Source of the DNA: Lepidodermella squamata | Lineage: Eukaryota; Animalia; Gastrotricha | Length of the DNA stretch: 64,000 nucleotides | Assembly (NCBI GenBank): GCA_047495785.1 | Contig: JBLDXI010000026.1 | Coordinates: 310,001-374,000 of the forward strand | Reading direction: 5' to 3' | Shown: positions 13,026-46,950 of the stretch, one piece after another | Position numbering within the stretch: position 1 is the stretch's first letter | Layout: each line of letters begins with the position of its first letter | Translations under genes and position numbers: made by a program | The notes under the pieces: model-generated | The model's database searches: none | Seen by the model: only the letters and a program-made list of their open reading frames with translations | What the model was told of the DNA's origin: nothing

Positions 13026-16000
13026 ATGGCTAACTGGGCTATGGTGTCGGGAATATCGCGGCGCCGCTCGCATAAAGCAAAGCAACAGCCGCACGCCCAC
13101 CCGGCCCAACTTAACGCTGATCAATCGGCTGCTCCCGCCCCATTCGACCAGCCAGCGCCGAGTGTGCGCGACGAATTAGCCAGAGTTTTTAAAGGTATCT
13201 ATTTTTTCATCCCAAATATCCTATTTATTTCAATATTTTTGATGACCCCATGTTTTCAGTAGTGCGCGCAGGAAGCTTCACCATTCGAGAAAAATGCCAA
13301 GCATGTAAATTGACAAACAAACTAACGTAAAAGCCCTATTCCCTTACATTTTTAACCCCGATTATTATATACGATAGTTCTCATTTTAGACATGCACCAA
13401 AAATAGAACCAGCCCTTAATAAATCATCGGATAATCGATGATATACGGTCTATAAAAAGCTCTTTCGTAGAACTGACCATAAGCATCCCCCGTAATTGCC
13501 CTGTTATCTTTGCTGTTCAGAAAAAGGGTACTGTTATACTCTCTTTAGGGGGTATATCGCGTTGTTTTTTTCCACCTTGCGCGCGGTATAGAACGATCAT
13601 TGCCTTCCGTTATAATGCCAAGCATAATAATATACCATCTGCATCGTTGAGTCACGCACTTTATTATTAGATCACGGAATATTTTTACCGCAAAATGTGT
13701 AAGTGATTTATTGATAAAATTAATTAACACGCAAAATGTTCGCGGCTGCGAGTCGACCGCGGCAAAGCCGTGCGCCGCAATCGTCACACTCGTCTGGCCT
13801 GGTCGCTTCATTCTTTTTTGGTGGAAACTCATCCGGTTCGCAACACCCAAGCGCAGCACTTCTCACATCTCCAGCCGCTAAAACATTAGCTAAAACTGCT
13901 CAAACCTCCGGCCAACACTCGTCTGCTCCAAGAAGGCGAAAACGCAGCCGTCGAAATGCAATCATCATGACCAGTGAAGATGAAGAAGTGGCGGAGGACA
14001 GTTTGGACGATGCTGAGCGGGCTGGAGAGAAGGCTCGACATCGACGCACCTCACAGCAGAAGGACGGTACATCACGAGAAAATCATCCCGGGATCATTCA
14101 AATTATCACCTTAATTATTTGAAAATCAGGTTTCGGTTTCCAACTTATAGATTTCATTCAGTCCCACTTGCTGGGTAATTGCAGCGCGAGGGCATTCTTC
14201 ACCTCTCAATTAGAAAGAATTTGATTGATTAGAAACGAGCTGTATCATCTAAATAGTAGCGCTATTCGCTTAATCTTCCCATTTCTTTCTTTTTTAATGT
14301 ATTGAGCACTAAAGCATGTTCCATGCCGCTTCTACTCCGTATAGGCCTGTGAAAAGACGGGGTGCTATCCGTCCTTCTAGATCTACCCCCGCTATTATGG
14401 CAAATTTCCAAGAAGGTTTTCGCTTCACTAACAACCTTTTGCACTATCTACAAATGTCTCCAAATAATTCCTGCATTTTCTTTCATTTTCAGTCTCTCGG
14501 CGAACCTCAAACACTGCTCAGCCGCTTTCCGCTGCTCAGCAATCGATTGCGAAGAGAAAATCTATAGTACCGCACCTTGTCAGGTCTTCATCAGGTCCTC
14601 AAGATGCTGGTTCGACAGCGGAGTTGGTGGACCTGCCTCGGAGTTGTGCCCTTCTCGCGCCGAGGAGAGTCACTAATTTATCGAAATATTCCCAGGCCTC
14701 TTTTTCACCGGCACCTCCCCCGCCACCGGTTTGGCCTATTCGAGCACCGGCCCGTGACACGTCACCGTCATCAAGCGACGTCGACGATAAAATACTACCG
14801 AAGACCCATCCTGTCACTGCGATTCTAGAGGAAGACGATGTAGACGACGAGCTAACCGAGTCTGATGAAAGTAATACCCTTCAAATAATCACCCGTGTTA
14901 ACTAACAAAAATTACTTACAAAATATACTAACAGCTCGAGCTAGATCCGAAAGGGTTGTTAAAGAAATCATGGATATGGCCAAGCCCCCTTTGCCGCAAC
15001 AGAGGTCTTTGGATGAAACAGTGACCTCGCAACGCAAAAGCAAGCGATGGTTCGGTAAAAAAGATAAGGATGCGGAGAAAAATATGACGAAGAGCCTATC
15101 TGCCCCGAACAAGCTTGCCATGATCGCAACGGCGTCGCTTATGATGATAAACGCTAGCATTGTCGGGATTAGTCGGAAACCAAAGCCACCTGTAAAGAAG
15201 ACCCATCCTGAAACAGACTCCGAGGGTACTTTGAATGCATTATTCCCACGCTTTTCCATGCATGCTTAGATGTATTTGTCAAAATTTGCGTTTTCAATTT
15301 CCTGAGATTCAGAATTGAAAGATATTTTTATTTCAGATGAAAAGCACGATTGCGGCAAGGAAGGGTGCGAAATCGTCCGGATCAATATTAGCGGAATGCC
15401 TTATGACATTCGATTAGCTGCCCTCAACAGTAGGCCTGATACTCTACTTGGAAATCCAATCAAAAGAATCGAATACTGGGACCCTGTTCGCCAGGAATTT
15501 TTCTTCGACCGATACAGACCAACATTTGAAGCAATTTTCGAGTACTATCAATACGGCGGGAAGTTGAAACGGCCGAAGCATGTCCCTGAAGATGTTTTCC
15601 TTGACGAGGTCAAATTTTTCGAAATCGAAAAATCATCAGTCGATGAATATCTGCGCGAAGAGGGTTACGTCGAGGAGAAATACGAATTACCCGAGGGTGA
15701 GCTGGCTAAGAAGATCTGGATTATGTTCGAGTACCCTGAAACTAGTCGGCTAGCCTTCGTAGTTGGTCTAATATCGATCGTCTTTACAGTTGTTTCAATC
15801 GTTTCATTCTGCCTAGAGACACTACCTCAATTCGCGGCGATCCACGTTTGTGTAGACCATAAACCTAATTTCGTCGAGCCTTTCTTCGTTATCGAAACGA
15901 TATGCACTGCCTGGTTTACGTTTGAATACTTGATGAGACTCAGTGTTTCGCCCAACAAATGGACCTTCCTGCGTAATTTCAAGAATATCGTCGATTGCGC

Positions 16001-16490
16001 AGCTGTTGTTCCTTATTACATCTCTCTTTTTACAACTTTGTACAAGATGGACTGTGAAACGTCGAAAGGAAGTGCCTCACTTGGGTTTCTAAGGGTCGTT
16101 CGCTTGGTTCGAGTCTTCAAATTGACAAAGCATTCAGCTGGTCTTCAAGTTCTCATGTTAACTTTCAAAGCATCTTTCGGCGGTCTTGGCTTATTTTTAG
16201 TCGCCCTGTTCGTCTGTATGCTGCTATTTTCTTCAACAATTTACTACGCCGAAGTTGGCCAACCAAATGCTACGATCGATTCTATTCCGGACGCGTTTTG
16301 GTGGAGTATAATTACGATGTGTACTGTCGGCTATGGTGATGAGTATCCAGTCTCAGTTTGGGGAAAAGTTGTTGGGTCGATCTGCGCAATTGCCGGCGTT
16401 CTGACACTAGCTATACCCGTTCCGATCATCACGGAGAACTTCAATAAATTCTATGCTCATAAATCGAAAGCTAAACCACCTACGAGTTGA
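13026..16490 (+). CDS. Shaker-type (Kv1-related) voltage-gated K+ channel with long low-complexity N-terminus
   Basis: T1 domain (INISG..PDTLLGNP..EFFFDRYRPTFEAI..YYQYGGKLKRP), S1-S6, TVGYGD filter and PVP motif in the exon from ~15338 to 16490. Upstream exons 14492-14870 and 14935-~15226 splice in phase. The 5'-most exons and the start (13026 or 13736) are uncertain. Confidence 0.9.
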
Positions 16491-17759: not shown

Positions 17760-18797
17760 TTAATATATAGACCTATTGAGCATGAAGACAATTCTTGAAA
17801 ACTCAGGCACCAAGTAAAATCCGTCACTGCTTGCTTGCAAACTTGATGAAAGAAGACCATGATGTGCAGCGAAATATCCCACTCCAGCAGCTTGCCACTC
17901 GACCCGAGTGATATGGCCGCGAAAGTCTGCTACGTCAGATCCTTCCTCAACATTGAACACCCTAGTTATCCAACCACTTATAATACCATCACTTCCACAT
18001 CCTCCACTACCAAAACTGAACATTTCGGCCCAGAACTTGGCATTCATCTCCTTTGCCAGGACATCAGTCAGCATTTGACTTGCAAGAGCAGCAACTTCGC
18101 CTAGGTAATCCACCATTCTTTGGGATGAAGCGAGTAGCAACTGCCATTTCAAGGTAGCCTCGATTATTGAAATCCAGTCCTGCGCTTCTCCCTCCAGTCT
18201 CACCCTTGGTATCCCGCATTTCATAGTGCTGTATTGATAGTAAGGCGAAACAGCCTCCGCAAACGCTGCGTATCTTGCCTCCTCGGAAATGCCAGTATCA
18301 GTCGAGAATCTGGGCAGTAAACCAACGATATTCGACGGCATCTTCGTCCTCAAAAGTGTGATCACAGAGCTAAGATTTATAGCTCTTTCAGGATCTTGGA
18401 AAACAATGACCGTTTGCAATCGGCTTGAATTTGTGAACAAATCCCGATTCTGCTCTACATTACGCTGAACGTGCTGGGAAATCACGTTCAACACTGTAAA
18501 GTAGAACATGTCAGGTCGCATAACAGCTCCAATATGGTCAGCCCAACATTTGACAAGATACATAGCCAGATTTTGATGGTAGTAATCGGCGACGTTTGGC
18601 AGGGTTGTTGTGACATGGGGTTGATAGGTCGTCCCATCACTTTCACCTGTGTTGAGAGATGACACTGCCCTTAGCAATTCTCGCCTCATGAAGTCTCGAT
18701 CTTCGCCGAACGGATTCAGAGTTAAGTTGCCTTTCAAGTTCAAACTCAAAGATTGAACACAAGGAAGAAGAAATAATATTAACATAGTCATTTTCAT
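17760..18797 (-). CDS. DUF4419-domain protein, intronless, with signal peptide
   Basis: Motifs H..AVMRPDMFYFTVL..ISQHV..N.E..RDLF, PRFST, YYQY...CGIPRVRLEGEAQDW and ISGWI, which are typical of DUF4419. Confidence 0.8.
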   Translation of the reverse strand: MKMTMLILFLLPCVQSLSLNLKGNLTLNPFGEDRDFMRRELLRAVSSLNTGESDGTTYQPHVTTTLPNVADYYHQNLAMYLVKCWADHIGAVMRPDMFYFTVLNVISQHVQRNVEQNRDLFTNSSRLQTVIVFQDPERAINLSSVITLLRTKMPSNIVGLLPRFSTDTGISEEARYAAFAEAVSPYYQYSTMKCGIPRVRLEGEAQDWISIIEATLKWQLLLASSQRMVDYLGEVAALASQMLTDVLAKEMNAKFWAEMFSFGSGGCGSDGIISGWITRVFNVEEGSDVADFRGHITRVEWQAAGVGYFAAHHGLLSSSLQASSDGFYLVPEFSRIVFMLNRSIY

Positions 18798-26907: not shown

Positions 26908-27120
26908 GAAACTTTTTCATTTAATACTAAGTAAACAATCGATTTTGAATTTTTTTACTTATAATAAAAAGGTGTACTCGATATTTCGCCAACGAGCCTT
27001 TCTTTTTTCGTACAAATTTCTAAAAGGACTTGTGAAACCAGGATGTATTTTAACGGAACCAAAGTCAAAATATGACTAAGGCCATTTTTGTAATAATTCT
27101 ACGAATTTTAGGTGCTTCGA

Positions 27121-27295
27121 GGTGCGGCGACAAAACAGCAACTGCGCAGAACAGCAAATGCGACAAAACAGCAAATTATTATTTCGCGACAAAACAGCGA
27201 AAACTTACTATACATTGTGGTTTCTGCTGTTATTTAGCAAGTTGAAAAAGTTGCTGTTATGTCGAGTTTGCTGTTTGCTGTTATGACGGTCTGCC
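27121..27295 (+). mobile_element. MITE family A, copy 3
   Basis: GGTGCGGCGACAAAACAGCAA...TTGCTGTTATGACGGTCTGCC, with the same ends and subrepeats as copies 1 and 2. Confidence 0.7.
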
Positions 27296-28114
27296 GACGA
27301 CGCGTGAGTTCTGCATTGAACACTCCTTCTTATAGAGAATTTTACACTGAAGTTACTGGTGATTTCTTAAGAATTATTGGGGTCAATCTTGACCTGCAAG
27401 AAAGCAAGGATTTCATATGACACTAGAAAATGTGTCTCCGTTACCGCAAATTTGGTTCCAGTTAAAGGAGGACACCCTGTGAAACTTACAAAAGGCGAAA
27501 ATCGAAATGAAGAATCTGATGTCTGATGCATGGTAAACATTCAAGATTGAAGCTTGACTTCGGAAATTACCTGTTGTTAGTTGTTAGCTATCGCATGTTT
27601 TCTAGTAATTTTTAAAATTTTCGTTATATTTCTCGTTCTGAGATTTTCGCATCAGCACAAATGTTCGCATCGTTACAATTCTGACGAAGCTAAAAAGCCA
27701 CAGCTGAATGGCCGTTATCCTGAGCTGATTTGCCGATTTCTTTGAGTCCGCCTCAAGAAATCAGCAAGACATTTTGAAATGGCACATAGGAAAGGGCAAA
27801 ACATAACCGAGCGATATTTCGGGTTCCTGAAGGACTGTTCGAAATTTCAGCAACGGCTGATTTAGCCGAAATTTTCTGCTAAGCTCTCTTTTGCTGTTAT
27901 GTCGCATAGACCAGAACTTTGCACTGCGTAAATAAATCTTCCATTTTCATGTGATGCTTTGAGACTATTTGAATTAAGTAAGCCTCATTTTTACTCTTTT
28001 TCACGTTATGAATTGATTAAACGTGGATTCTGCACTCAGCGTTCAACAAACATGCATTGAAAAACCGTGCACATATTATAGTAGTAGCTGTGATACACAT
28101 TGATGTGAGTAGTC

Positions 28115-29542
28115 ATGAGTGGATACGGCCTCGAGCTGGCAATTTCATTGTCAGGCCTCGCCGCAGTTTTCATACCCATCGCAATCTCCAAGTTCATTAA
28201 AAGCTTCTTGCAACAAAACAAGCTGATCCAAGCCGAAAAGCTGAAATGGCAACAGGACCATACCCTCTACTTCGACAGGGACGTCCGAAGCCAAGCTATC
28301 GAACTCCTAGACCGCGGCGAATTTTCACCCGGCAAAACTGTAAACCTATGCAAAATCGACCGACATTACCTCGGCGTGAGTTACTCCCACTGGTTCCTGA
28401 CCTGCGACGATTACTGCCTGGAATTCGGTTCGGACGAAATCGACCTCGACGAAGCTAGAGTTCAAATCGTGAGAAACCAGTATGAAGACGGCAAGTACCG
28501 AATTGAAAAGATCCAGCAAATCACCGAGGTCATGCATCAACGCATTCGAAGCGTTGTTGGCATGTGCAATTACTCGATGTGTCTCCGCAACTGTGAGCAT
28601 GTCGCTAATTACATTGTCCGTGGCCGATGGATGAGTGCGCAGATGGATGGCGAGAATGGGCTGATGCGATTCTTCAAGGTTCACATTGCCAGCGACATTC
28701 TACGGCGCATCAATTCATTCCCAGCTCAAATCAGGCCGCATTTCTTCGACCCGAACCATGCCCCGAGGAAGGTTTACAGCTTCATCGATGACAACTTCCG
28801 AGCTACTAGGTTTGAGTACTATCTCGACTCGAACCAGGATAAGGATTACAACATCCTTATCGTTGGACCAACCGGCGCTGGAAAGTCTCGTCTTATCAAC
28901 GTGATTTTCAACGAAGAGATTTGCGAGTCGGAGATTAGTTTCGAAAACGTGACCAGGGAGATCTACTTCATCAGAGGTAAGGGCAAAGTCGCTGGGCAAA
29001 AACGAAACATTATCGTGGCTGATACTGTCGGCTTCTGCGACCGTCAGTGGAACAACGAAGAAGTTCTTCGAATGTTACGTGGTCGCATTGGAGCTAATGT
29101 TCGCCATCTGGATGCAGTTTTCATCCTGTGCTCGGCTTCAGACCGACTACCACCTGCGTATTTCGAATCAGTGGGAAATATCCTAGACTGGTTGGGCTAT
29201 CAAAATCGGAAGAATCGTTTCATGTTCCTCGCGACTAAGTCTGATTCGATAAACGATCGGAAGATTGAACAGCTAAAGGACCAATTTCCGAGGCTATTTC
29301 AGGCCGAGAAGAATGCGGCAGATCCTCGGGATGTCAACCAAAGAGCGCTGCGGAGGATCGACGAGTTAGGCGAGCTTCATTTTGTTGGATTCCCCGATGA
29401 AACGGTTTTTGATGGCAATGCGTCGACGAAGCAAAAAGTGCTGCAAAATTGGAAGGATATAAGGGATTTCATTGACGCGGGAAGCGACGAAAGTAACATT
29501 CACGTTCCATCACTGACTGCTGGTTACTGTCCAATTTTGTAG
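28115..29542 (+). CDS. Intronless fusion: N-terminal TM + LRAT/PLAAT-like (H-NC) domain + AIG1/GIMAP-like P-loop GTPase + CaaX
   Basis: YSHWFL and NYSMCLRNCEHVANY (LRAT NCEHF box); GPTGAGKS (G1), VT (G2), DTVG (G3), TKSD (G4); terminal CPIL*. Confidence 0.8.
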   Translation: MSGYGLELAISLSGLAAVFIPIAISKFIKSFLQQNKLIQAEKLKWQQDHTLYFDRDVRSQAIELLDRGEFSPGKTVNLCKIDRHYLGVSYSHWFLTCDDYCLEFGSDEIDLDEARVQIVRNQYEDGKYRIEKIQQITEVMHQRIRSVVGMCNYSMCLRNCEHVANYIVRGRWMSAQMDGENGLMRFFKVHIASDILRRINSFPAQIRPHFFDPNHAPRKVYSFIDDNFRATRFEYYLDSNQDKDYNILIVGPTGAGKSRLINVIFNEEICESEISFENVTREIYFIRGKGKVAGQKRNIIVADTVGFCDRQWNNEEVLRMLRGRIGANVRHLDAVFILCSASDRLPPAYFESVGNILDWLGYQNRKNRFMFLATKSDSINDRKIEQLKDQFPRLFQAEKNAADPRDVNQRALRRIDELGELHFVGFPDETVFDGNASTKQKVLQNWKDIRDFIDAGSDESNIHVPSLTAGYCPIL

Positions 29543-29749
29543 AATGTGATTTTCAGTAAAAACATAATCAAATATAAGTTTCGATTCAGATCATAGGAAG
29601 TCTGTTTTCCGCCATTAAGTTTTCCAGCAATCTAGAGGAACCTTCGAAAGTAATCAACGACAAGAAACGTTACAACTTTTATTTTATGTTAATTGCTGAC
29701 TTCGAATCATCGTCAGAATTGGCGTAGTTCTATGTTCTTGAGTTTGCAC

Positions 29750-32700
29750 TCAATCCGAAAGTATTGCAGGGGCTAGGCCTAATTTACACAGGCTTCGGTA
29801 ATTAACATTCAACAGCAAAGACAACTGCAAAGCCTCAGTGTTTTGATCGGCGTTTTGGCTTACGGTGGAAGGCAATACAAAATGCTTTGTTCCAGTCGTC
29901 GATGAAGGGAGTGAGAAGACATATTGTGCGACCAGAGAGAGAATAGGTATATCATCCTTCAATCTGTTCCAAAATCGGTAGTTTTCATCACATTTGCCGA
30001 TTTCGTTTGTGACTAAGGGCGCTGTGAGGTAGCTACCATTAAGGTATCTAATTTCTTGGGGAAGAACTCTCTGAAGCTGAGACTGGTTAACAGCTGAGTT
30101 GTCTTCGACCCTTCTTTCTGGCAGGCATATGCGTTTAAGCGGCGGCAGCTGGTGGTTGAAACTTTCGGAGTATTTCTCGAATTCAGGCTCCGTTGAAGGA
30201 TAGCGTTCGTCTTGCTGAGATTTAGTCTCCAGCAAGTCTCGAATAGGCAGTCCTTCAATTAGAAGCTTGACATCTTCATCAGTTAAAGCTGAGTATCGTC
30301 GCAGCCGAAAGTCGAAATGGAGAGCTAACAAGTGAATGTCGCTTTCAAAATGACTTCTGAAGCTTTCCTTCAATCCATTGCAAACCAGATCACGTAGAGG
30401 CTAAAATGTGTCTCAAAATAGGTACTTGTGCACAATTTAATTGGGAGAAAACAAACCTTTAATCTGTTTTGAAAATTTCCGCAATTTTGCAAGTTCGCGA
30501 TCGCTTGTCGGACAACAACGAGAACTACGCCGCAATGAGCATCCTGCGTCTCGCAGGCTTCAATGGCATCGATCAACACTTCGATCACATTAGCGAGAGC
30601 TGTAGTCTTATTAATATCCTCTTCTTTGACATCGGGCATTAAATAGGCCTCTTCGGATTTTTTTATAAATCTGATCGCCTGGAAGTCAATAAATTGGCGC
30701 AGGAATTGAAGAAGATAATTCCAGCGATAACTGCGCTCTGAATTACGATGGAACTTGGAGTCATGAGAAGAATCTGTCTTCGTATAATCTTTGGCCATCT
30801 TGACTATCCGTCGAACTTCATCTGAGCTTTTGAATGACTCATAAAAGCTGTTGATCAACAAATGGCAAGGATCTCTGAGCGTTCTTCGGCCGTAGTCGCA
30901 GTTCAATCTTGCAAACGTTTCGTTGGCCAATGAGGAAGGATTCATTTCACTCATGAGTTCATCTAACAGCTCAGTGAAACCGTCTTTGAAATGACTGCGA
31001 GCGTTCGAGATGATTTCGCGGTCTGGGGATAATTTCGATAGATCAAGGCAATCGGAACTCGTCCTTGATGGGTTCGAAGTGATCGCAGCTATGAATATCG
31101 GTTTTTGAGCAGAATCCCCGTTGAAGCTAACTTCTTGCTGAAATCGCTCTACAGCCGCTTTGATTTGACCGAGCAACATGCAGCTGGTGACTTGGTGATA
31201 ATCTATTTCGAAAATTCTAGGAGCAAATCTGATACGCTGAAACGAAGCGTTCATCATGTACTCAACATCGATGGTTTTACGCTATAACAGACCGATCGCA
31301 TACACGCTCAAAAAACTCTGCAGCTTACATAAAAGTATGCAGGGCTACTAGCGCGTATTCGGAGTACTGCGCACTATAAAAAGTACTACGCGCGCGCATA
31401 ATACTATGAAATATACTTGGCCCGCAATTTTGTGGTAAAAAATGAATGCACTGGACAATTGACCGACAAATATACTGAGCTTTTTGTGGATGTTTCCATG
31501 AAATTTTCGGATTACCTGGTGGAGAACAGTCGAGCGTATCCAGAAATTGATAAAAATGCATGTGTAACCGTGGGTTTTCTGCCGTTAGGCGACCTGATAG
31601 CGACCTGAAAGTGCAAAAACCTTGAAAAAATGCACCCACTGGCGTTTTTGGCGGCGCTTCTTCAAGAAGCAGGATGGGTTCAACCACAAGTTTGTCACAT
31701 TCCCTAGTAGAGCACATAAAAGGCTTTGTGGGGAACCAAGAAATAGCTAGTTAATATGGTGGTTATCCACGGCTTTTCAGTCGCTTCCCTCCCGGCTTGC
31801 AAATCAGTGAGAAAATGAAAATTTGGTGTTTTCAGTCGCTCTTATCTCGAAAAAAACCCATGGTTGCACCATAGCTTTTTGTTGTCAAATTGGAGACGGC
31901 GCTGGGAGGAAGGTTTTGACAGGAAAAGCAGCAAGGATCCCCACAGCCTATCCACGACTTTTTCGTCGTGATTAGCACTCACTTCGTCCGACCCAACACC
32001 TCGAAAATGCATGACCTTGCGTCTTTTGGAGCACTGCTGCAGAAACGGAATGGGTTCAACCATAGTTTTGTCAAATTCCCTAGTAGAGCACAACAAGATC
32101 TAACTTGGGAAGAAAGAAGTCCCAGTAAATGTAGTGTTTATCCACTGCTTTTCAGTCTTTTCCCTCCACTTCCGAATCAAGTCCGAATCGAAGGAAAAGT
32201 GAGCATTTAGGATCTTTCATCGCACTCATCTCGAAAAAAACCATGGCAGCACCGTAATTTTTCGTAGTCAAATGGGGGAGGCAATTGAGAAGAAGGTTTT
32301 AAAAGGGAAAAAAGCAAAAACCACCACAACTTATCCACGACTTTTTCGTAATGCTTAGCAATGACATTTCAAGCACAAAATCGAGATTCGGAGCCGTTCT
32401 ATTCTGAAACCGCACAACGCGGAGACTTTATTCCAAGTCTCACAAGTTGATAAAAGTGCCTTCTTCTATAAGGATAACTAATATGCCGGTGATAGCATGA
32501 ATTGGGGTATGCATTCCGGCCTGAACCGTTGCCCTGACCGCGGCAACAAGACGCTCGAGATGCGGACCCATACCATTTAAATCCCTGGTATCTGTGGACT
32601 GACGTAGTACACAGATAGGTTTCCGATTATCCTTCTTGACTCTCATGCTCGCTTGCATCAACTTAAAGAAAATACGGTGGTAAAACCAGTAGATTTTGCT

Positions 32701-36879: not shown

Positions 36880-38148
36880 ATGAAAACTCTTCGAATCTTC
36901 TGTGTTCTTTCAGCCATCCTAACAGAGTCATGCATCCTAATGGAGTCACTAATTTTCGCTTCCGATGAAGACAATTATCGATTCGGTAACGAATCGCAGA
37001 GGCTTGCAAAAGCATTCTGGAGCACATACCCAACTTTAGAACAACCGAATCCGACTTCGAATGGCTTGTATCCTGTTAAGACGGCACTTGAGCTTTCCGT
37101 CGTATCATTTGATGGGATTGATGATATGACTGAGACAATGACTTTTCTTGGTCGCGTTAAACTCTCGTGGCAAGATGACGGCGTCTCGAAATTGGGGAAA
37201 ACAACATCACCGTTCGTCATCAACTACCTGATACCCGCCACGCAAATCTGGGTACCAATAATTTGGCAATTCAATGATCCCAGAAATCCTGACCTATTCA
37301 ACTCAATAAGGCAGGTATCGCAAATTTCGGTTCAATGGAATACGGTAAATGACGTCAAGTCAGATAACAGTAGCTGCGGGTGGTACATTTTTGCGTATTT
37401 CTATGCAAATTGTCAAATGGAAGACGGCATCAAGTACTTCCCTTTCGACACGCACTCATGTGACTACAGCTGGGCGCCCATTGCTCATGACCATCAGGTT
37501 AGAATCTACCCGGACTTATCGCGTGTGAATGGCATGGACTCTGTGAGTTATATAATTGGCAAAGAGAATGCGTCAGTCAATGGCTCAGTGTGGTCACTGA
37601 TTAGAGTCGATATCATCCAACAGATTGCTATAAACGACCGAACTATGTTGACCTACCGATTTACGGCTCAACGGCGACCAGGCTATCACATTCAGACCAT
37701 CATCATCCCAAGTGGGCTCGTTGCTATTCTTCAACTGGTCGCCTTGTGGTTCCCACATTCGCCTGATCGTTCGACCTTTTTGATAACCATACTTCTGGCT
37801 TTTTGGATCATACAGTCCGCAGTAACAGCAAGTGTTCCTAAAGTTGCTAATTCTGCCCTACTGATCAGCATTACTGTGCTATCTTGCATCAATGTAGCCT
37901 TCATAGTTGAATCAATAGCGGTTCTGTTCTACCTTGAAGGGCCGGAAATATTTTTCGGACGATTTATTATTTACAAGTCGTCATCTTTGCCTTCAGCCGA
38001 TAGCAGGATGGATAGAATGGCTCGGGATGTTGAGAAAGAAATCGGAGGCAAGAAGAATCATCGCCTGATATTCTACATAGACACGTCTCTGTTTGTGATT
38101 GGCATTATTGTGACTGTTCTTAGCCCAGCAGTTTTGTATTTCTTGTAG
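36880..38148 (+). CDS. Divergent intronless Cys-loop ligand-gated ion channel subunit, copy A
   Basis: Signal peptide, LSWQD, IWVP, CQMEDGIKYFPFDTHSC, QRRPGYH-M1, M2 DRSTFLITILLAF, four TM helices. Confidence 0.88.
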   Translation: MKTLRIFCVLSAILTESCILMESLIFASDEDNYRFGNESQRLAKAFWSTYPTLEQPNPTSNGLYPVKTALELSVVSFDGIDDMTETMTFLGRVKLSWQDDGVSKLGKTTSPFVINYLIPATQIWVPIIWQFNDPRNPDLFNSIRQVSQISVQWNTVNDVKSDNSSCGWYIFAYFYANCQMEDGIKYFPFDTHSCDYSWAPIAHDHQVRIYPDLSRVNGMDSVSYIIGKENASVNGSVWSLIRVDIIQQIAINDRTMLTYRFTAQRRPGYHIQTIIIPSGLVAILQLVALWFPHSPDRSTFLITILLAFWIIQSAVTASVPKVANSALLISITVLSCINVAFIVESIAVLFYLEGPEIFFGRFIIYKSSSLPSADSRMDRMARDVEKEIGGKKNHRLIFYIDTSLFVIGIIVTVLSPAVLYFL

Positions 38149-39863: not shown

Positions 39864-41712
39864 ATGATCAAGTACATCATTTTATTAAGCTGTTCTGTAG
39901 AGCTGGCAGCTTGCTGCAAAGCTCCGTCTCCGCAGCTAGACAATGAACCAAAAGAATCGATTCAATCGCCTCCTTCGAACAAAATACAGATGCCGACATT
40001 CTACTCATCGTCCTTCCCAGATCCCGCCACGCCCCTTATAAAATCCTCATCCGTTATACCCATAACAACTCACTTCGAAGAAAAAGAAGCAACAACGACG
40101 GAAAGTTCAGATCCATCTACTACGCAACCCTTCATTCAGCCGGTGAATAACAGGAAGCGAAGAAGTTGTATCGATTCCTATACCGAAGAGACGAATGGCG
40201 GCTTTTGTTTGTAGCAGAGATGATTTCTTCGATATTCCCGCAAATTGGACGTTAGGACGGACCCAAAGGTATGAAATTCGTATTTTGAGCAATATTCAAG
40301 TTTAAGAGCAATACGGTTTTTGGATATTGCTATAGAATGGAAATAATTCTCGATGAAAATCTTGAGTTTCGCGGCACGAGAGCTGGCGAATGCGAAAAAT
40401 GGGGTCCACTTCTACCAGTAATGGAATCTTCGAGGAGAACGAAGAAGGGGAGGATGAACAATGTCCTCCTGCCAGTCATAGAGAACGGAGTGATCACTCC
40501 GTTCTCTATGCTACCAGTAAAGAATTCTTCGAGGAGAACGAAGAAGGGTAGGATGAACAATGTCACGGCTTCATGGAATCTATTCGAGTGCCACATTTCA
40601 CAAACAGCGTTCGCATACCACACAAATTTGATAACCTACTTGGCTAAATGTTTCGCGGAGCATATTGGGGTTGTAATACGGCCTGATATGATATATTTTA
40701 CAGTAATGAACGAAATATCTCGTTTTGTGACAGGAAATTCTGAAGCAGTTCGCCACTTGTTCACCACTCGAAAGGATGGTAAAGATACACTTATTGCCGT
40801 CGTACCTCCTGGACGGACGATGCTTGATCTTGATCAGATCATGGACCAATTAGAACAGAAAATTCCCAGTAATATCAGTGGGCTCACGCCTAATTTCACG
40901 ACAGATTCGCCAATGAGCCTTGAAGCCCGAAAGGCTGCATTGGCTGAGACGGTTTCTCCATACTATGATTTCAAGATGGTATCATATTGTGGAATACCCA
41001 AAGTTCGGCTGGAAGGAACTCCTGTAGACTGGACGAAAGTATTGATCGCCGCGAAAAAATGGCATCAGCTCCTCAGTCCTTATGGCCTGGGTTCCTATTT
41101 ACAAGGCGTTCTTGAATTGGTTAGCAAAATTCTTGAGGATGCTAAAGCCGAACAGCTGACACGAGCGTTTTGGGTAAATATATTTCGAATTGGTCATCCG
41201 GAATACGGTTGTGGGGATTTTCCTCCGCTAATTCATGGCTGGATGGCTACGCTTCATAATTTGAAAGAAGGCGTAGAGTTGGGCGCCTTCCCACATCATA
41301 TCACCAAGGTTGAATGGGAGCATAATCAATATGGGGACTTCGTTGCGCATCACGGCTTGTTTTCTTCAAAACTTGACAGCGATAACTTTTTGGTTCCTGA
41401 ATTCTCCCGATTCATTTTCAAGAAATCAATTGTGGGGATTTTCCTCCGCTAATTCATGGCTGGATGGCTACGCTTCATAATTTGAAAGAAGGCGTAGAGT
41501 TGGGCGCCTTCCCACATCATATCACCAAGGTTGAATGGGAGCATAATCAATATGGGGACTTCGTTGCGCATCACGGCTTGTTTTCTTCAAAACTTGACAG
41601 CGATAACTTTTTGGTTCCTGAATTCTCCCGATTCATTTTCAAGAAATCAATGGCGACTGACGAAGCTAGGAACTGGGAAGGGGATCATTTTCGAAGCAGG
41701 GACTGCTGGTGA
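39864..41712 (+). CDS. DUF4419-domain gene with internal duplications; possibly disrupted or misassembled
   Basis: Motifs HIGVVIRPDMIYF, PNFTT, YYDF...CGIPKVRLEGT..DW and IHGWM. The signal-peptide ORF 39864-40214 is out of frame with the exon ending at 40268. There is a ~55-bp internal duplication and a 221-bp tandem duplication of the 3' end. Confidence 0.7.
41210..41651 (+). repeat. Perfect 221-bp tandem duplication
   Basis: 41210-41430 and 41431-41651 appear identical by eye. Confidence 0.9.
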
Positions 41713-45681: not shown

Positions 45682-46950
45682 ATGAAATCTCTGCGAATCT
45701 TTTATATTCTCTCGGCCATTCTAACAGATTCTTGCATCCAAATGGAGTCACTAATTTTTGCTTCGGATGAAGACAATTATCGATTTGGTAACGAATCGCA
45801 GAGGCTTGCAAAAGCATTCTGGAGCACATACCCAACTACAGAACAGCCGAATCCATCGTCGGATGGCTTGTATCCTGTCAAGACGGTGCTCGAAGTTTCG
45901 GTCGTAACATTCGATGGGATTGATGACATGACTGAGACAATGACATTTCTCGGCCGAGTTAAACTCTCGTGGCAAGATGACAATGTCTCGAAATTGGGGA
46001 AAACAACATCTCCGTTTATCATTAACTACCTGATACCGGCCACACAAATTTGGGAACCGGTCATTTGGCAATTCAACGATCCAAGAAACCCCGACCTGTT
46101 CACGTCAATAAGGCAAGTCTCGCAAATTTCGATACAATGGAATACGGTGAAGGACGTTAAGGCACCAAACAGCACCTGCTCTTGGTTCGTTTTTTCCTAT
46201 TTTTATGCAAACTGTCAAATGGAAGACGGGATCAAATACTTCCCGTTCGATACTCACTCTTGCGACTACATCTGGGCACCCATTGCTCATGACCATCAGG
46301 TCAAACTTTACCCGGATTTGTCGCGTGGGACTGGTATGAACTCGGTCAGTTGGATAATCGGCAAAGAGAATTCATCTATCAATGGATCCGTTTGGTCGCT
46401 GATTGGGATTGAAGTTATCCAAAGAACTGGCATTAATGACCGAACTGTGCTGACCTACCGATTTACGGCTCAGCGACGACCAGGCTATCACATTCAGACC
46501 ATCATCATCCCAAGTGGGCTCGTTGCTATTCTTCAAATCGTCGCCTTGTGGTTCCCACATTCGCCTGATCGTTCGACTTTTTTGATAACCATACTTCTGG
46601 CATTTTGGATCATTCAGTCAGTGGTTACGTCAAGCGTTCCTAAAGTTGCAAATTCTGCCCTTCTCATCTGTATTACTGTTTTATCTTGCATTAATGCGGC
46701 CTTCATAGTTGAATCTATAGCGGTTCTGTTCTACCTAGAAGGCCCGGAAATATTTTTCGGGCGATTCATAATTTACAGGCCGTCAACTTCGCCATCAGCC
46801 GATAACACCTTGGATAGCATGGCTCGAGACGTTGAGAAGGAAATTGCTAGCAAGAAGAATCATCGCCTGATATTCTACATAGACATGTCTCTGTTTGTGA
46901 TTGGCATTCTTGTGACTGTTCTCAGCCCAGTGGTCTTGTATTCCTTGTAG
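45682..46950 (+). CDS. Divergent intronless Cys-loop ligand-gated ion channel subunit, copy B
   Basis: Same 422-aa length and close similarity to 36880-38148; about 550 bp of upstream DNA is also homologous. Confidence 0.88.
   Translation: MKSLRIFYILSAILTDSCIQMESLIFASDEDNYRFGNESQRLAKAFWSTYPTTEQPNPSSDGLYPVKTVLEVSVVTFDGIDDMTETMTFLGRVKLSWQDDNVSKLGKTTSPFIINYLIPATQIWEPVIWQFNDPRNPDLFTSIRQVSQISIQWNTVKDVKAPNSTCSWFVFSYFYANCQMEDGIKYFPFDTHSCDYIWAPIAHDHQVKLYPDLSRGTGMNSVSWIIGKENSSINGSVWSLIGIEVIQRTGINDRTVLTYRFTAQRRPGYHIQTIIIPSGLVAILQIVALWFPHSPDRSTFLITILLAFWIIQSVVTSSVPKVANSALLICITVLSCINAAFIVESIAVLFYLEGPEIFFGRFIIYRPSTSPSADNTLDSMARDVEKEIASKKNHRLIFYIDMSLFVIGILVTVLSPVVLYSL

Follow-up and report, generated by a model that had tools for sequence, protein, structure and literature searches.

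An intact single-exon gene of Lepidodermella squamata couples a PLAAT/LRAT-like domain to an AIG1/GIMAP-type GTPase between two predicted membrane anchors

What would a protein do that carries two domains of catalytic type in one chain, with a membrane-anchor signal at either end? The question is raised by a gene in a stretch of 64,000 nucleotides (nt) from the gastrotrich Lepidodermella squamata (GenBank assembly GCA_047495785.1, contig JBLDXI010000026.1, positions 310,001 to 374,000 of the forward strand), hereafter the window, in which a single ATG-to-stop open reading frame (ORF) of 475 codons plus stop was present at 28115..29542 on the plus strand. The deduced protein comprised five parts in the following order: an N-terminal hydrophobic helix, a permuted NlpC/P60 domain resembling those of LRAT and PLAAT proteins, a conserved linker, a GTPase of the AIG1/GIMAP/Toc34 type, and a CaaX box (CPIL). 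An earlier examination of the DNA letters and ORFs alone (the sequence-only reading) had described one intronless ORF with an N-terminal helix, the motifs YSHW and NCEH, a G1 to G4 set and CPIL, and all of these motifs were found to be present. The features, with residue numbers in amino acids (aa) and the evidence used for each, were as follows.

28115..29542, plus strand: complete single-exon coding sequence (ORF list, homologues, dN/dS, cover by run X1)
28130..28198, plus strand: N-terminal hydrophobic helix (aa 6-28), predicted signal-anchor (Kyte-Doolittle)
28226..28639, plus strand: LRAT/PLAAT-like permuted NlpC/P60 domain (aa 38-175), predicted (Pfam, Foldseek, VIA, Atlas)
28382..28393, plus strand: His box YSHW (aa 90-93; His92), second strand of the modelled sheet (conservation, model)
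28421..28423, plus strand: Glu103, candidate third catalytic residue, on the next strand (conservation, model)
28589..28600, plus strand: NCEH (Asn159-Cys160-Glu161-His162), Cys160 being the candidate nucleophile at a helix start (conservation, alignment with PLAAT2)
28640..28843, plus strand: conserved linker (aa 176-243; alignment A1)
28844..29434, plus strand: AIG1/GIMAP/Toc34-type GTPase domain (aa 244-440; Pfam, sequence and fold matches)
28865..28888, plus strand: G1 P-loop GPTGAGKS (aa 251-258; Lys257 in 94/94 and Ser258 in 93/94 relatives)
29021..29032, plus strand: G3 DTVG (aa 303-306), followed by conserved Cys308-Asp309 (Asp303 and Gly306 each in 94/94, Cys308 in 86/94)
29234..29245, plus strand: G4 TKSD (aa 374-377; motif position)
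29528..29539, plus strand: CaaX box CPIL (aa 472-475), predicted geranylgeranylation signal (motif, conservation)

Two maintained catalytic-type centres are thus located in one chain between two maintained membrane-anchor signals. On balance, we favour the view that the product is a doubly anchored PLAAT-like acyl-enzyme that acts on membrane lipid and is controlled by the attached GTPase.

Full-length homologues of the 475-aa protein were detected (best E about 1e-102), and a search of the source genome (121 Mb in 151 contigs) for copies revealed a second copy of the gene on contig C25, encoding a protein 99% identical. The two loci were alignable over all 4.4 kb fetched, flanks included, with 93.9% identity; because the alignment extends through the flanks, they are diverged haplotype or homeologous blocks, and the possibility that the C25 copy is a recent retrocopy was rejected. 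Between the two ORFs there were 67 nucleotide differences, of which 62 fell at third codon positions and 62 were synonymous. This bias, together with the full-length homologues, indicates that the ORF did not arise by chance. Over the whole ORF the synonymous rate (dS) was 0.235 and the non-synonymous rate (dN) 0.0045, giving a dN/dS of 0.019; the ratio was 0.03 for the LRAT-like domain and 0.016 for the GTPase, while the N-terminal helix and the linker possessed zero non-synonymous changes. Purifying selection is strong throughout the protein.

Two public sequencing runs, X1 and X2, were matched to the 4.4-kb locus. Run X2 covered the whole stretch evenly. The contigs of run X1 covered 28181-29555 and an upstream exon with a GT..AG joint (27111>27372) but left all intergenic DNA uncovered, a pattern resembling that of a transcriptome, and no splice joint was observed within the ORF in either run. 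The gene is probably transcribed. An alternative start or an upstream exon was considered and rejected, as an in-frame stop lies 2 codons 5' of the ATG, the next Met is residue 141, and no AG acceptor is present at 28179-28180, where the X1 contig match ends; the ATG at 28115 was retained as the start.

Profile and fold matches place the C-terminal half of the protein among the AIG1/GIMAP/Toc34-type GTPases, in agreement with the assignment made in the sequence-only reading. The protein scored 31.9 bits against Pfam AIG1 (PF04548; cut-off 27) over aa 246-384 and 32.9 bits against MMR_HSR1 (cut-off 21.9), and its top match by sequence among solved structures was GIMAP7 (3zjc, 1.6e-5), followed by septins. 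When the full-length model, with a predicted local distance difference test (pLDDT) score of 77, was searched by Foldseek, ranks 1-28 were all Toc34, Toc33 or GIMAP1/2/5/7 (E 2e-8 to 7e-6), the fold matches to Toc34, GIMAP7 and GIMAP2 ranging from 2e-8 to 1e-6. The window protein possesses the complete set of G1, G2, G3 and G4, with G2 assigned to Thr280, a residue kept in 87/94 relatives; this count, like the others out of 94, was taken over 94 external representatives of the family. Ahead of the GTPase, family-specific invariant residues were observed in alignment A1 just before the linker (Trp172, Ser174 and Gln176) and inside it (Pro203), a region in part modelled with low confidence.

Since Foldseek with the whole protein gave GTPase matches only, the N-terminal domain was folded alone (model pLDDT 75). 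In this model, with strands and helices given in domain numbering, strand 51-60 holds His92, strand 63-67 holds Glu103, and Cys160 opens helix 123-132, so that His92 and Glu103 lie on adjacent strands ahead of a Cys at a helix start, which is the permuted NlpC/P60 order. The sole probable Foldseek match of the domain was a parechovirus 2A H-box/NC protein (probability 0.99). Structural matches in VIA included Aichivirus 2A (Z 6.1), the PPPDE deSUMOylase 2wp7 (Z 5.7), PLAAT4 (Z 5.6, 29% identity, root-mean-square deviation 3.3 over 91 residues), YiiX (Z 5.4), CLN5 (Z 4.8), TseH (Z 4.4) and the 3kw0 peptidase (Z 4.2); seven of the eight best rows belonged to the permuted papain-like or NlpC/P60 fold group, and the identity shared with PLAAT4 compared with 9-18% for the other structural matches. 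A shape search of the ESM Atlas returned the family's own cluster first and then PPPDE and LRAT-like clusters. As each single Z-score is modest, the fold call rests on the agreement among these matches, by which the modelled domain is a permuted NlpC/P60 fold, closest to the PLAAT/LRAT and H-box/NC proteins. The sequence-only reading had named such a fold as the check on its proposal, and the models came out as it had predicted.

Comparisons at the sequence level pointed in the same direction. Each of the 18 aligned family members matched Pfam LRAT (PF04970) with E<=1, the lowest value being 5.7e-6; the match of the window protein spanned the NCEH end of the model, and a member from the bdelloid rotifer Adineta carries a precomputed PF04970 match. 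A profile of the domain gave six matches in the PDB, all marginal, including PLAAT2, a picornavirus 2A protein and PLAAT4, with NCEH aligned to the NCEH of PLAAT2 (4dpz). The H-box (HW) and the NCEH motif by which the LRAT/PLAAT group is recognized are both present. Among the external representatives, Asn159 was kept in 94/94, Glu161 in 93/94, His162 in 90/94 and His92 in 89/94, and position 103 was Glu in 84/94 and Asp in 3/94.

At the N-terminus, the stretch aa 6-24, LELAISLSGLAAVFIPIAI, had a Kyte-Doolittle value of 2.12 in a 19-residue window, compared with no more than 1.18 elsewhere in the protein, which makes the hydrophobic helix postulated earlier plausible. The helix has no basic residue ahead of it and is followed by Lys26 and Lys29. 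Most of the protein is predicted to lie on the cytosolic side because of the positive-inside rule and because the retained CaaX box could be prenylated only in the cytosol. The protein starts MSGYGLE, without the Met-Gly start and small residue at position 6 that characterize N-myristoylation; 56/94 relatives start with MG, which aligns with the start of the window protein, and 46/94 fit MGxxx[STACGN]. At the C-terminus, CPIL has the Cys at -4, the aliphatic a2 residue and the transferase-selecting last residue of a CaaX box, as had been noted from the sequence; Cys472 was kept in 86/94 representatives, and the last residue was Leu in 69 of 83 CaaX-bearing members. By the usual rule, Leu at this position denotes the geranylgeranyl type.

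About 10 paralogues, all single open frames, were found in the source genome, forming at least three old lineages in a tree. Five of them carry a hydrophobic N-terminal helix, namely the window gene, its second copy, a 64%-identical pair 200 kb away with the pair's own second copy, and one more; all five end in CxIL. In a quick maximum-likelihood tree these five formed one clade with 100% support and a long stem, nested among MG-type sequences, while two paralogues start MGxxxS/A as outside relatives do. Because of this nesting, the tree indicates that the transmembrane-type helix replaced the myristoylation-type start once, in this lineage. That paralogues losing MG gained a hydrophobic helix suggests that the N-terminal membrane anchor itself is the feature kept by selection. 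A tandem pair of paralogues, L007 and L008 (G000:C28:1030717-1032030 and G000:C28:1047303-1048451), 16 kb apart, had the N-termini MLSWLFGQ and MFAGLLGK, respectively, with neither MG nor a long hydrophobic helix, and L008 had no CaaX box.

The two-domain layout was not confined to this genome. A word-index search gave 38 relatives, most of 430-470 aa and with 35-42% identity over about 90% of the query; those with names came from the nematode Acrobeloides, the springtail Folsomia ('GTPase IMAP family member 4'), Adineta and two Bradysia flies. An exhaustive search using a hidden Markov model of the N-terminal domain alone yielded 362 clusters at E<=0.001, of which 246 reached E<=1e-10; the full-length matches were mostly 410-470 aa long with this domain first, and all 18 aligned members matched both domains. 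One member came from the protist collection EukProt, and most of the rest were on short environmental contigs. These matches identify the fusion as the normal layout of a sizeable eukaryotic family. Longer relatives (560-1109 aa) contained, by Pfam, only the GTPase, one zinc finger and repeated N-terminal domains, without a clue to function. In P0039, P0129 and P0031/P0033/P0140 (630-706 aa), the N-terminal domain profile matched at least two stretches, which indicates that the LRAT-like domain, preceding the GTPase, has been duplicated in tandem.

The architecture had not been recognized in the sequence-only reading, and that judgement was borne out in part. The literature searched on LRAT, PLAAT or NlpC with AIG1 or GIMAP (as well as on lipidation and on Folsomia) contained no report treating both domains as one protein, those Aravind-group papers that name both mention each separately, and no characterized family with this layout was found. 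The layout is nevertheless not unique, being standard for hundreds of clusters and labelled in databases as 'AIG1-type G domain-containing protein' or 'GTPase IMAP family member 4'.

In the mechanism that we favour, the protein would be held on the cytosolic membrane face at both ends, at the N-terminus by the signal-anchor helix (by N-myristoylation in most relatives) and at the C-terminus by a geranylgeranyl group on the CaaX cysteine. With Cys160 as nucleophile, His92 as base and Glu103 as the third residue, the LRAT-like site would form a covalent acyl intermediate with a membrane glycerophospholipid, the activity being that of a phospholipase A or an acyltransferase, as in PLAAT enzymes. 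The nucleotide state of the GTPase would decide when or where the LRAT-like domain acts. Self-association of the G domains is probable, as in GIMAP, Toc34 and septin GTPases; a homodimer prediction with two copies of aa 225-465 scored 0.01 against a mark of 0.32, which weighs neither way.

Several observations weigh against this proposal. Against Pfam LRAT, for which the cut-off is 24.3 bits, the window protein scored 19.4 at full length and 21.6 when the domain was used by itself, and the VIA Z-scores of 4-7 are in the range that the tool calls common. The second His is the third catalytic residue in PLAAT2/3, but the corresponding residue here is Glu103, an equivalence drawn from strand order in the model and not from residue-level superposition. 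The same fold group also holds protein-directed enzymes (PPPDE deSUMOylases and CLN5) and picornavirus 2A proteins, and for this reason a lipid substrate is something we infer. G4 is non-canonical in many relatives (T/N in 90/94, K in 53/94, D/E in 81/94). Support for transcription comes from run X1, which consists of stored contigs and is only guessed to be RNA, so that transcription is probable rather than proven, and the first 66 nt of the ORF lie outside the cover of that run. Finally, the nucleophile position was Cys in 65/94 and Ser in 27/94 (about 29%) representatives, with Gly or Asn in two. Because the Ser forms retain the rest of the site (His92 in 23/27, Glu or Asp at 103 in 22/27, His162 in 25/27), we read them as a nucleophile swap in a maintained active site and not as decay to a pseudoenzyme.

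The fold similarities raise the alternative that the N-terminal domain is catalytic on proteins or lipidated proteins, as a thiol peptidase, deconjugase or thioesterase like PPPDE/DeSI or CLN5, with the GTPase controlling, for example, the removal of acyl groups or modifiers from membrane proteins. The PPPDE structure 2wp7, CLN5 and two NlpC/P60-type peptidases score near PLAAT4 in VIA, a PPPDE cluster is among the nearest Atlas shapes, weak matches to Pfam Peptidase_C97 were seen in 2/18 members, and the maintained site residues would fit any Cys/His hydrolase. At the sequence level, however, LRAT was the sole family matched by all 18 members, and PLAAT4 shared by far the highest identity among the structural matches. 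NCEH and the HW box are moreover signatures of LRAT and H-box/NC proteins, and double membrane anchoring would put the site beside lipids; we therefore regard a protein-directed activity as unlikely.

It is quite unlikely, in our estimation, that the LRAT-like domain is non-enzymatic, serving as a structural, membrane-binding or regulatory module in a membrane-tethered GIMAP-like GTPase scaffold. Asn159, Glu161, His162, His92 and the acidic residue at position 103 are each kept in 87-94 of the 94 representatives, Ser forms included, a pattern expected of a working site with a nucleophile swap and not of a scaffold, and the low dN/dS of the domain is likewise against this view. The Ser, Gly and Asn replacements at the nucleophile position would fit it, as would the closest Foldseek matches, picornavirus 2A H-box/NC proteins, for which to our knowledge no enzymatic activity has been established. 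Members do decay, since paralogue L010 has NSEH with neither P-loop nor CaaX box and several family fragments in the source genome contain stop codons.

Retroposition or horizontal transfer had been suggested in the sequence-only reading from the lack of introns among intron-rich neighbours. The gene upstream indeed has the GT..AG intron seen in run X1, but several neighbours are long single ORFs that contain complete domains (391 aa for a Kv channel, 422 aa for Cys-loop channels, 345 and 371 aa for DUF4419 proteins), so that intronlessness is not exceptional locally. It is a trait of the whole family: besides the paralogues, a relative on a 262-kb environmental eukaryotic contig is single-exon, and a Bradysia gene has space for one intron of about 56 nt. 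Neither an A-rich tract or poly(A) remnant 3' of the stop codon nor a target-site duplication at the gene flanks was found, direct repeats there being short and at chance level only; retroposition, lacking these hallmarks at the locus, was rejected, and the observations give no support to a recent horizontal transfer of this copy either.

The same reading had cast the protein as a candidate immune effector that attacks membranes. For the family at large, a single-chain, GTP-switched, membrane-damaging effector of cell-autonomous defence is a doubtful idea, argued from analogy. In such a scheme, a target membrane, such as a pathogen vacuole or a damaged organelle, would be sensed by the AIG1-type GTPase or would serve as its site of assembly, after which the GTPase would permit the tethered PLAAT-like domain to hydrolyse or remodel that membrane. 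As a guess, it draws on the link of AIG1/GIMAP GTPases to immunity in vertebrates, plants and molluscs (PMC7053062, PMC8857920), on the expansion in copy number in the source genome, and on the patchy distribution of the family. Those members that carry names are spread over small animals of soil and fresh water, as is often seen in defence families, and this scatter is real. That the window copy both came in by retroposition or transfer and serves as a dedicated membrane-attack effector in cell-autonomous immunity is very improbable: a hAT-like transposase remnant does adjoin the gene, but the locus has the collinear block on C25 and no hallmark of retroposition, intronlessness is family-wide, the paralogues fall into old lineages, the lipidation signals are of eukaryotic type, the GC content is ordinary, and the literature searched gave no infection-response or expression report for any member.

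The remaining observations concern the neighbourhood of the gene. Directly downstream, at 29750-31257 on the minus strand, ORFs of 207 and 295 aa adjoin each other in different frames, and one of the two weakly matched the hAT transposase dimerisation domain (E 0.0086). The variant positions of this region were not spaced in threes, unlike those of the GTPase gene, and it is probably a decayed hAT transposon. At 27100-27400, the word depth of run X2 rose to about 7,500, compared with about 100 elsewhere, with many short skipping joints, and a repeat appears to lie within the intron of the upstream gene. Single-ORF genes for DUF4419 proteins were located at 17760-18797 (minus strand, E 2e-31) and 40337-41452 (plus strand, E 6e-35). 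DUF4419 occurs mainly in fungi and bacteria, and finding it in an animal raises the possibility of an old gene transfer. Two single-ORF genes for Cys-loop ligand-gated channels of 422 aa, at 36880-38148 and 45682-46950 (both plus strand), are about 9 kb apart and each is near a DUF4419 gene, which suggests a local segmental duplication. At 15315-16490 (plus strand), one frame of 391 aa encoded a Shaker-type Kv channel (BTB_2 + Ion_trans), the best named relatives of which are nemertean, brachiopod, annelid, flatworm and mollusc proteins, all spiralian, with identity of at most 63%. This places the source animal outside the well-sampled phyla, most likely as a spiralian invertebrate lacking close relatives among the database entries; probes for the spliced leaders of nematodes (SL1) and bdelloids gave no match in its genome.

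The molecular action of GIMAP/AIG1 GTPases is still unclear, and in a GTPase of this type that is permanently joined to a recognizable catalytic domain, the switch would have an output that can be assayed directly. Organelle membranes can be dismantled by PLAAT enzymes; a PLAAT-like activity placed under a nucleotide switch and two lipid-type anchors would, if our proposal holds, be a new form of control over a hazardous activity. The exchanges that have occurred naturally, with a transmembrane-type helix in place of myristoylation and Ser in place of Cys at the nucleophile position, are in effect mutagenesis experiments already carried out, in a family that is widespread in small soil and freshwater eukaryotes and labelled in databases only as a generic GTPase. 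Were the defence idea true, one polypeptide would unite what vertebrates divide between GBP/IRG-type GTPases and PLAAT enzymes.

The two domains and the two types of anchor are each known already; of their combination, no description was found in the literature searched. With the PLAAT/HRASLS and LRAT proteins (PF04970, H-box/NC, including picornavirus 2A), the window protein shares the predicted permuted NlpC/P60 fold with His strands ahead of the Cys helix, the HW box and NCEH, and membrane tethering, which is predicted in its case; PLAAT4 is the structural match of highest identity. It differs from them in having Glu in place of His as the third site residue, in the substitution of Ser for Cys in a quarter to a third of its family, in its Pfam LRAT score below the curated cut-off, in an extra N-terminal helix pair before the core, and in a linker, GTPase and CaaX box instead of a C-terminal transmembrane tail. 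With the AIG1/GIMAP and Toc34/Toc159 proteins of the septin-like TRAFAC clade it shares an AIG1 score above the cut-off, G1 to G4, the matches to GIMAP7, Toc34 and GIMAP2, a helical extension after the G domain, and membrane association, again by prediction. Its identity to solved members of that group is about 16-20%, its anchors are a prenylation signal and an N-terminal anchor and not a C-terminal hydrophobic segment, and its GTPase is fused to a putative enzyme domain, a fusion that was found described for no GIMAP. The prenylated GBP1, GBP2 and GBP5 and the myristoylated IRG proteins are dynamin-like GTPases without an acyl-enzyme domain, whereas the window protein is of the AIG1/septin-like clade, and no homology was detected between them; by analogy from general knowledge, what they would have in common is the idea of a lipid-anchored GTPase working on cytosolic membrane faces.

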